Below, in pieces: positions 50,001-53,000 of a stretch of 64,000 nucleotides of DNA. The position numbers and the translations under genes are program-made. The notes beneath the pieces were generated by a model. The model made no database searches. It had not been told where the DNA came from and was given only the letters and a program-made list of their open reading frames with translations. The stretch comes from Asterias rubens (Eukaryota). The stretch is taken from the NCBI RefSeq assembly GCF_902459465.1, contig NC_047072.1:13578001-13642000 (forward strand), given 5' to 3'. Positions within the stretch are counted from its first letter, which is position 1; each line of letters opens with the position of its first letter.

Positions 50001-53000
50001 TGTTTGATTGTCTTTGCTTTCCACAATTAGAAAGTTTTCAGTGTTGAAATGAGGAAATCTGAAATAGCTAAAATTTGGGTCCTAGTTTCACAGCTTTTTC
50101 TCTGTAAAAACGTTCATCCCTGTTTAAAATGTGATCTCTCTACAGCCCTTTCACACTATTCTAATCCCCGAGGCAACCCCGGGTAATAGCGGACAGCCCT
50201 TTCATACCTGGACCACTTTACCCCTGATTTACCCCGGGCAAATAAGGCATACCCTGGAGAATATCCACCCCTGTTCTGGAGTGGGGGTAAGCGGTAAAAC
50301 TCTGGGGTGTTTTGGAAATGTGCAACCGGAACCCCGTACTCCTGGGGTTTCCTCGGGGCTGTATTTCCTGCGGATAGGAGATACAGTATGAAACGGGCTT
50401 AAAGGAAACTTTTGTATTCTTGAAGTTCTAGAACTACATCGGAGAGTTTGTTAAAGAGTTCATGGTTTAGAATGGAGGTGACATCGAACATTTTAAAACA
50501 CTGGTATTAACATGTTACTGTAATCTCCCTCAAGGGCTGACATTGCTGGCTTGACGGAAGCAAAGAGACTTCTAGAGGAGGCTGTGGTTCTACCACTCTG
50601 GATGCCAGACTATTTCAAGGGAATCCGAAGACCATGGAAGGTAAGATAGCTTGTATTGTTCTCACTTCTCACTTCAGATATACCCCTCAGCAAAGTAGGA
50701 ATTTTACTGATTTATGTGGCAGTATAACAAATCTTTCGAACCAAGTTAAGTTTTTCTTTTGGTAATTAGTTTTCAAACTGAATAAAGCAGCTTAGAATAA
50801 AAGAAGACTTAGAATGCTTTACCGATCAACGTTCTTGGCATTCATTTGAAACACTTACTGAGATTGAGATCTTTAGTTGTTTCAGAATTTAAGTCTAATC
50901 AGACCTGAGTAAGAGATTACCAAATTAAGCGCCCGCTCTTTTCTGATTTCCTTAGGGCGTCCTTATGGTTGGTCCGCCAGGCACTGGCAAAACCCTCTTA
51001 GCTAAAGCAGTGGCCACTGAATGCGGCACTACATTCTTCAATGTCTCCTCCAGTACACTCACGTCCAAGTGGCGTGGTGAGTCTGAGAAATTGGTGCGTT
51101 TGCTCTTTGAAATGGTACGTAGGACATTCCTTTTATTTCCTTTCGCATGCTTTTTGTTTCTTTTAACGTTAGGGGGTGATGATGGTTGGGCCACCAGGTA
51201 CGGGTAAAACTATGTTGGCCAAAGCAGTGGCCACAGAGTGTGGTACGACGTTCTTTAATGTAAGCTCTTCAACCCTGACCTCCAAATATCATGGGGAGTC
51301 GGAGAAGCTTGTGCGAATTTTGTTTGAGATGGTACGTATATGTGTGACAAAAAAAACCATCATTCATGAAAGTAAAGAATTATCTGTTGTGAACTTCTCA
51401 CCAGCCAAAATGAAAGTTAGTAAATATAGTTCAAATTTGTCAAACCTTGCGGAAATATTCTTAATTATTTCATTTGGAAAATTTCAAATGCAAAATGGAT
51501 TTTTATTTTAGGAGCCATATTAATATATATAAAAAAATCCTTAATTTGCACTGCAAATAATTTTGATAATTGAGAATAATTGGCCATTTTATTTGATAGT
51601 TCAGAATTCCGTTTTGTTGTCGAAATGTAATCTTTGGACAAACTTTTAGCTCCCATTACTTGGCCCCAGTCAGACTTCCAAATTTGCGTGAATCTGGTCA
51701 GTTGCAGGCACTTCAAAAAGGTGTTCAGTTTAAAACAACCATGAGTTTCAGTATTTTTTTTTTACCCTCATTTGTTTTTCCATTTCCCCTTATTTCCAGG
51801 CACGTTTTTATGCACCCAGCACAATCTTCATAGATGAGATAGATTCCATTTGCAGCAAGAGGGGTTCCAGTTCAGAGCACGAAGCAAGCAGGAGGGTCAA
51901 ATCAGAACTTCTTATTCAGATGGATGGTAAAGTGTTCCCCTTTATAATCATACACGGACAAAAAAAATCAACGTTCACTTGAAAATAACAATCAATATTG
52001 AAAACCTCTTACCCTTGGCAAAGAGATAATGGTTTCAAAATAGAGGGAGACTGAATACAATCAATGTTTGAGAATTATGCTATAGTTAAAGGAACATTAC
52101 AGAATTGATAAGAACAAAAATTGTCTAAGATCACAGATTGACATTAAACTTACACGGTCTAATGATGATAATAGAAAACATCCCTTAAAATATTTCTGCC
52201 TGAAATGTCATATTTGATGATATTTGTTGGGGTTTATCAAGCGTTTTATAATTTTTTTTAAATTTTTTTTTAATTGATTTCATGCTAAATGTGTATTCGA
52301 TTTTTCACTATTTTCTCGTGACCCAGATGGCCGTTCGATCTCAATCTTCTACAGGTTTGTCAGTTTGTGTATATGGTGGAATACATTAAGTGCTAACACT
52401 GCCAGCAACTGTTTTGTTGGCAAAAATCTATTCTCTAAATGTTCCTTTAATATTGTGTTTTAAACATTTTTTCACCATTTTCTTGAAGTGGGGAATCCAC
52501 CCAAACATGTGAGTAGAAAACCAGGTTATAAAGTTGTGCTACTTTGCAAACTGCTGAACAAGTCATAGTCACAACTGTAATTGTAATTATTGCCTTGTAC
52601 CTAAATGATCGATTGTTTTCTTACAGGTGTAACTGGAGCTACAGGTGGAGAAGACAGCACTAAAACAGTCATGGTCCTAGCTGCTACTAACTTCCCTTGG
52701 GACATTGACGAGGCGCTAAGACGTCGACTCGAAAAGAGAATCTACATTCCTCTCCCATGCCGTGAGTATTTTATCTTATTCAGACAGGAATGGGAATGAA
52801 CTCTTTTGCTTAGTTAAGATCTTCCTGTTAAAAACTGTACTAAACAAAATTCCTGATTGTATAATTTTTTTTACAACCCTCCCTTTGGGCATTTAATTTC
52901 TGAAAGGAGTAGTCTTTGTGAACATTCTGTTAGGGGTGGAAAACTTTGCTAGATTCTAAGACTCTGCCAGTGTTTAAAGGTTTTTGTTAGGGTTTAAACA

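Follow-up and report, generated by a model that had tools for sequence, protein, structure and literature searches.

We found that the katanin p60 gene in a 64,000-nucleotide (nt) stretch of the genome of the starfish Asterias rubens (NCBI RefSeq assembly GCF_902459465.1, contig NC_047072.1, positions 13,578,001 to 13,642,000 of the forward strand; hereafter the window, to which all coordinates refer) contains two tandem copies, 6a and 6b, of the exon encoding the segment from Walker A to pore loop 1 of the ATPase core. Both copies are present in RNA at similar depth and form the two arms of a bubble in assembled transcripts, and the pair is conserved in eight further lineages with a single residue, Arg or His in pore loop 1, fixed between the two types. 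The explanation that we consider likely as a whole is that of an old exon pair of which each mRNA takes one copy, giving an Arg/His switch, with steric exclusion operating in this genome. In this model the exon would have been duplicated in tandem, most likely before the protostome-deuterostome split; an mRNA would carry either the upstream copy, giving K-W-R-G (K-[W/Y]-R-G across animals), or the downstream copy, giving K-Y-H-G; and the 58-nt intron between them would sterically block the joining of 6a to 6b. Factors bound to that same intron, in which a GCAUG lies between the 6a donor and the 6b pyrimidine tract, may set the choice of exon.

The exon pair and its gene

Exon 6a (50956-51114, + strand; Arg type, KWRG) and exon 6b (51173-51331, + strand; His type, KYHG) are each 159 nt long and in phase 0, with an AG acceptor and the donor ATG/GTACGT. 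They are identical at 48 of 53 amino acids, 113 of 159 nucleotides and 18 of 53 third positions, and at 32 of the 48 identical residues they use different codons. The five amino acid differences are L3M, L14M, W39Y, R40H and L49I. By the Nei-Gojobori method the proportion of synonymous differences (pS) is 0.82, which is saturated and beyond correction, while the nonsynonymous distance (dN) is 0.13. Only the first 2 and last 3 bases are shared at the ends, leaving 154 variable nt between them. An earlier note on this DNA, made by a model from the letters alone, had reported the length, phase and splice sites of the two exons, their identity, their codon switches and the 58-nt intron (51115-51172, + strand), and our measurements returned the same values throughout. 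Its claim that the pair arose by an old tandem duplication with both copies under purifying selection likewise agrees with the saturated silent sites and with the intact pair seen in eight other lineages, protostomes included.

By its sequence the gene (coding span 47013-54547, + strand, from exon open reading frames and Pfam) is katanin p60, a meiotic-clade AAA ATPase, and ATP-dependent microtubule severing is its predicted activity. It has 10 exon positions, the sixth of which exists in two alternative copies. Pfam places the KATNA1-type MIT domain (PF21126, KATNA1_MIT) on exon 1 (E = 2.6e-27), a single AAA domain (PF00004; Walker A GPPGTGKT) on exons 6a/6b, 7 and 8, AAA_lid_3 (PF17862) on exon 9 and Vps4_C (PF09336) on exon 10, and the top relatives among solved structures are human KATNAL1 (6b5c) and KATNA1 (5zqm). 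Positions 1-51 of the AAA profile are matched by 6a and by 6b alike, and the match resumes at 55 with exon 7 (51800-51926, + strand; starting ARFYAPS and matching positions 55-93); the two copies are therefore alternatives rather than consecutive parts of the protein. The common upstream exon is exon 5 (50535-50640, + strand; ending RRPWK). The remaining introns of the gene measure about 315-1140 nt by the gene model, and RNA confirms three of them at 584, 315 and 700 nt.

Use of both exons in RNA

For the region 49750-52800 we drew on two raw RNA-seq runs (X21 and X22) and on Logan contigs of two others (X1 and X3). Both exons were covered with sharp edges and at similar depth, the values for 6a and 6b being 25.4 and 22.8 in X1, 34.3 and 26.2 in X3, about 10 and 6 in X21 and 3.2 and 3.3 in X22, and the introns flanking the pair had zero depth. 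In the bin 51076-51177 the depth was accounted for by the exonic part alone, leaving the 58-nt intron without coverage. A word search of sequencing indexes gave a matching picture: of the words of 50956-51331, a fraction of 0.76 is present in X1, as expected of both exons minus the intron, and the same fraction in five more runs of unstated type; the fraction is 0.55-0.59 in X2-X5 and 0.97 in one DNA-like run. RNA runs labelled 'starfish metagenome' also have words in common with the window. The 6b RNA shows two differences between organism labels, at 51199 and 51310, both at third codon positions.

The listing covers 15 of 73 splice joints. Among these, the joint of exon 5 to 6a (50640>50956) and that of 6a to exon 7 (51114>51800) are present in all four runs, and the joints 49950>50535 and 51926>52627 anchor the common exons in reads and contigs. 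In the reads of X21 the two 6a joints are supported 5 and 8 times, roughly half of what we see at the constitutive joints of exons 4 and 5 (11) and exons 7 and 8 (18), as would be expected if the other half of the transcripts take 6b. The topology of the contigs is consistent with this idea. In X1 and X3 each exon occupies its own 214-nt contig, which departs from the genome precisely at the exon edges, and 214 nt is the sum of the 154 variable nt and two flanks of 30 nt, as expected of a k=31 de Bruijn bubble whose flanks are common to both arms. Moreover, the depth of exon 5 (about 58) is near the summed depth of the two arms (sums of 48 and 60). The 6a arm continues unbranched into exon 7, and therefore no 6a>6b junction survived assembly. 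Indeed, no 6a>6b continuation (51114>51173) was found in the contigs of X1 or X3, and neither arm enters the other exon.

Given the 214-nt arm, the sharp edges, the zero intron depth and the additive depths, we infer that 6b is spliced to exons 5 and 7, and the RNA evidence as a whole supports the mutually exclusive use of 6a and 6b, at about 1:1, in bulk RNA. The earlier note's proposal of a mutually exclusive splicing switch thus gains support from the depths, the bubble, the depth additivity and the conservation of the pair, and of the joints it had listed those of 6a were seen in four runs while those of 6b lie outside the 15 of 73. Several points weigh against this reading. The 6b joints, whose expected support is just below that of the 6a joints, were not among the joints listed, and the splicing partners of 6b are therefore deduced rather than read off; rare transcripts with 6a and 6b together, or with both skipped, are possible, because contigs lose rare variants and the raw-read counts are small; and the ratio of about 1:1 in bulk RNA gives no sign yet of tissue or stage specificity. 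Fragment-level protein searches returned no spliced 6b transcripts of the window's own species.

Conservation and loss of the pair

Relatives were found by exon-level searches and by looking up the encoding contigs, which yielded nine pairs including that of the window. In each of the eight further lineages the upstream exon encodes K-[W/Y]-R-G and the downstream one K-Y-H-G, and both members are intact. The intron between the a and b exons measures 60 nt in the Mytilus-like bivalve L001 (its exon proteins match those of the Mytilus coruscus model exactly), 52 nt in L002, 111 nt in L003-5, 61 nt in L006-8 (where it aligns with the intron of Pinctada), 62 nt in L095-97, 234 nt in L099, 182 nt in the annelid Lamellibrachia satsuma (L100) and 68 nt in the bivalve Pinctada imbricata (L101). 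Synonymous distance (dS) between a and b is saturated in eight of the nine lineages, and dN ranges from 0.035 to 0.14. Scanning metagenomes with exon 6b added no pairs; most of what it retrieved were single exons, of protist origin or cDNA-like.

At position 40 all nine a exons encode R and all nine b exons H, and this is the sole position fixed between the types. The earlier note had emphasized a paired change in pore loop 1, W-R versus Y-H. Its Arg/His half is conserved, but the W/Y half is lineage-specific, as W39 is found in three of nine a exons and Y in the other six; I49 is found in five of nine b exons.

Not all lineages have kept both exons. The His-type exon stands alone, directly after exon 5, in L009-L014, L098 and L016. 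In L016 a decayed exon a lies between exon 5 and the His exon (L016:360-510); it has kept its acceptor and donor and carries frameshifting deletions of 4, 10 and 21 nt, the last of which removes the pore loop. Conversely, the Arg type was found alone in insects, in vertebrate-like fragments and in the sponge Geodia. A full-length search with a butterfly protein returned mainly insects, all of the Arg type, and no His-type pore loop was present among the vertebrate-like exon fragments recovered. The existence of both His-only and Arg-only lineages means that either form can suffice alone. The absence or decay of one exon in relatives, which the earlier note would have counted against its reading, does therefore occur, in L016 and the His-only lineages, yet the pair is intact in nine. 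Some His exons have other aromatics, namely KWHG (P0219) and KFHG (L012-L014; L012:2552-2710); the aromatic varies and the His stays.

Three NCBI katanin p60 models, from Lamellibrachia satsuma, Pinctada imbricata and Mytilus coruscus (P0387, P0397 and P0404; L100:5797-6296, L101:3083-3468), came to our attention through their inflated scores. They join both exons in tandem, which duplicates the 53-residue P-loop/pore-loop segment, and they are likely annotation errors. A Myotis davidii model (P0399) also contains two exon copies, but these are identical, both encoding KYRG, which suggests an artefact of assembly or annotation and not an Arg/His pair.

One could argue that one exon of the pair is rarely used or non-functional, or that both are normally included together. 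The ab initio models of Mytilus, Pinctada and Lamellibrachia would fit joint inclusion, and the decayed exon a of one lineage would fit a dispensable copy. We consider this possibility largely refuted, and its remaining likelihood very small indeed: 6a and 6b reach similar depth in RNA, the splice sites of both are intact, neither contig arm enters the other exon, the intron between them is uncovered, purifying selection acts strongly on both in nine lineages, and joint inclusion would double AAA positions 1-51 including the P-loop.

Age of the duplication

Tree tests speak to whether the pair arose once or repeatedly. A tree that pairs a with b within each species was rejected (delta log-likelihood 70; approximately unbiased test, p-AU 7.5e-5), and it was still rejected when codons 39-40 were left out (p-AU 0.0009). 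The tests did not reject a clean split between a and b exons (p-AU 0.27-0.45). Without constraint, a branch of weak support (56/87) had all of the seven a exons that were analysed first on one side. Given these tests, and the common order, phase and Arg/His pattern of the pairs, we favor a single duplication before the protostome-deuterostome split, although it is not proven from these sequences; the exon pair is probably older than half a billion years. It should be weighed against this that the tests of single pairs were individually non-significant (p 0.08-0.6), only the joint constraint being rejected, and that two duplications, one in echinoderms and one in lophotrochozoans, were 17 log-likelihood units worse and only borderline rejected (p-AU 0.11 and 0.05).

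How joint inclusion might be prevented

A 5' splice site lying within about 50 nt of the branch point is known to prevent splicing sterically (PMC7969005). In an intron of 58 nt, a branch point at least 10 nt from the 3' splice site sits less than about 50 nt from the 6a donor. The 3' half of this intron is a pyrimidine tract. The intron measures 52-68 nt in six of the nine lineages, where any branch point 10-18 nt or more away from the 3' splice site would fall under the threshold, and in these short-intron lineages the donor and the candidate branch sites are 10-36 nt apart. A transcript with both exons would be in frame, as would one with neither, and therefore nonsense-mediated decay cannot police the choice. 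On these grounds joint inclusion is probably blocked sterically in this genome, the branch points being predicted. The short intron as the means of exclusion, as the earlier note had it, is accordingly plausible at 58 nt, but it is not universal. The introns of 111, 182 and 234 nt in three lineages count against the steric part of the model as a general account; some other mechanism must act there. As to competing RNA structures of the docking/selector type, a scan of 50600-51850 for inverted repeats gave only short AT-rich matches, none of them convincing, and we set this mechanism aside.

We also noted a candidate control element in the same intron. The window carries GCATG at 51145-51149 (+ strand), 31 nt past the 6a donor and 23 nt ahead of the 6b acceptor, and the a-b intron contains the motif in five of nine lineages; it precedes exon b by 23-28 nt in four of these and by 45 nt in the fifth. 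As read from the sequence, it is a lead to a possible Rbfox-type control site ahead of exon b; by the position rules for Rbfox, such a site favours the upstream exon and represses the downstream one. This raises the possibility that trans-acting regulators, and not the shortness of the intron, mainly set exon choice and exclusivity, with an Rbfox-type protein on GCAUG enhancing a and blocking the branch/pyrimidine region of b. We regard this as possible but on balance doubtful, and it would be compatible with the steric model. The three lineages whose introns are too long for steric exclusion fit it, and a count of at least five in nine was reached in 1 of 20,000 shuffles. However, attention fell on the motif post hoc; when all 5-mers were compared without bias over eight independent lineages, GCATG and TACCA tied at about 1/3000, a marginal value once corrected for 1024 5-mers; the motif is absent from four lineages; and the role of Rbfox is a predicted one.

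Comparison with known systems

There is precedent for tandem homologous exons kept apart by splice-site crowding. In OGDH (exons 4a/4b) and alpha-tropomyosin (exons 2/3) either a short intron between the exons or a branch point remote from its own exon keeps the 5' splice site and branch point less than about 50 nt apart (PMC7969005). The katanin pair resembles these in its 58-nt intron with a pyrimidine tract in the 3' half, with the difference that its branch points are predicted only and that the steric arrangement is not conserved along with the pair, the introns being 111-234 nt in three lineages. A second likeness is to exons 5a/5b of SNAP25 and of the SCN alpha genes, which are described (PMC2581893, PMC9741552, PMC12772994) as equal in length and phase, with few residue differences, highly expressed in both forms, very old and under purifying selection. 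Unlike these, the katanin switch lies in an AAA+ motor core, spans P-loop to pore loop 1, and comes down to one fixed Arg/His change; the katanin pair is also absent from vertebrates and insects.

Vertebrates, too, have two p60 catalytic subunits, KATNA1 and KATNAL1, with near-identical AAA cores and with exon boundaries that match those of the window gene. Human KATNAL1 is identical to exon 6a at 51 of 53 residues and shows KYRG in its structure; human KATNA1 also has KYRG. The vertebrate diversity comes from gene duplication, whereas that of the starfish comes from exon choice.

Mutually exclusive tandem exons as such are already known, and what is new here is the katanin pair, the unusual traits of which are its location in an AAA+ motor core, its age and its reduction to one fixed residue. 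The earlier note knew of no prior description, and our full-text literature searches likewise found no account of alternative pore-loop exons in katanin or other AAA ATPases; automatic RefSeq isoform annotations may exist. The papers on tandem-duplicated exon substitutions that these searches found make no mention of katanin. The human and fly catalogues lack the pair because neither vertebrates nor insects have it, and its absence from human, fly and worm is probably why it is missing from the catalogues of mutually exclusive exons and from the katanin literature searched.

Other transcribed segments within the gene

Two intronic segments also gave RNA signal. An island of coverage in intron 4 (50260-50361) reaches a depth of 108 in X3 and about 14 in X21, and positions 50283 and 50301 carry fixed differences; none of the joints listed tie it to katanin exons, and one of its 30-mers has a single occurrence in the window. 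A repeat or a small transcript unrelated to katanin may account for it. The segment 52086-52440 in intron 7 is very deep in all RNA runs (400-700x in raw reads and a summed word depth of 10^4-10^5 in contigs), with numerous variants, loose ends and joints on 'opposite strands' at 52107/52425. Its profile resembles that of an interspersed repeat family with high expression, separate from the katanin mRNA; in this copy neither Rfam nor tRNA scans gave a match, and an inverted repeat is absent. Rfam and tRNA scans over the katanin gene region as a whole returned nothing.

Possible function of the Arg/His alternative

Katanin was discovered in echinoderm eggs, and it reads the tubulin tail with its pore loops. 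The pore loop 1 of C. elegans MEI-1 is KWRG, and a sea-urchin egg p60 cDNA encodes KYHG. According to reviews, pore loop 1 of katanin is an X-R-G motif and makes up a positively charged entrance to the pore, which takes hold of the acidic tail of tubulin (PMC8369831, PMC12076492, PMC6279391). Exon b swaps to His precisely the Arg of X-R-G, the residue next after the pore-loop aromatic. With both forms co-expressed at about 1:1 in bulk RNA, it would be reasonable to suppose that the His form has a weaker or pH-dependent grip or an altered sensitivity to glutamylation, or that Arg and His subunits form mixed hexamers. The earlier note had suggested that the two enzymes may be tuned to different tubulin-code states, tissues or pH; in bulk RNA the two exons are used about equally.

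Alternatively, the Arg/His difference may matter elsewhere, in hexamer assembly, ATPase coupling, regulation by modification or metal/pH sensing, or the isoforms may be nearly equivalent and kept for regulation, such as dosage or independent control. The lineages with His only (L009-L014, L098 and L016) and with Arg only (vertebrates, insects and Geodia) are compatible with this alternative, as either form alone supports life, and so is the co-expression of both forms at about 1:1 in bulk RNA. We nevertheless think it unlikely, as the single fixed difference falls on a substrate-facing X-R-G position and has been kept in nine lineages despite saturated silent sites, and as reviews assign it to the electropositive, tail-binding pore (PMC8369831, PMC12076492).

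If the reading of a switch in substrate grip is carried to its furthest extent, the bilaterian ancestor may already have made two katanin enzymes by swapping Arg for His. The choice between them would be regulated by cell type, possibly by Rbfox through GCAUG; with His, katanin would grip glutamylated tails more weakly or in a pH-titratable manner, in the egg or embryo for example, and the Arg form would serve neurons or cilia, with the His exon lost in vertebrates and insects and the Arg exon in some annelid-like lineages. We offer this broader scenario tentatively and think that in its entirety it is rather improbable. Nevertheless, a conserved, natural Arg/His alternative at the substrate-facing pore loop 1 would be a ready-made test of how severing enzymes read the tubulin code, and what has been called 'katanin' in echinoderms, molluscs and annelids may be a mixture of two enzymes, or of mixed hexamers.

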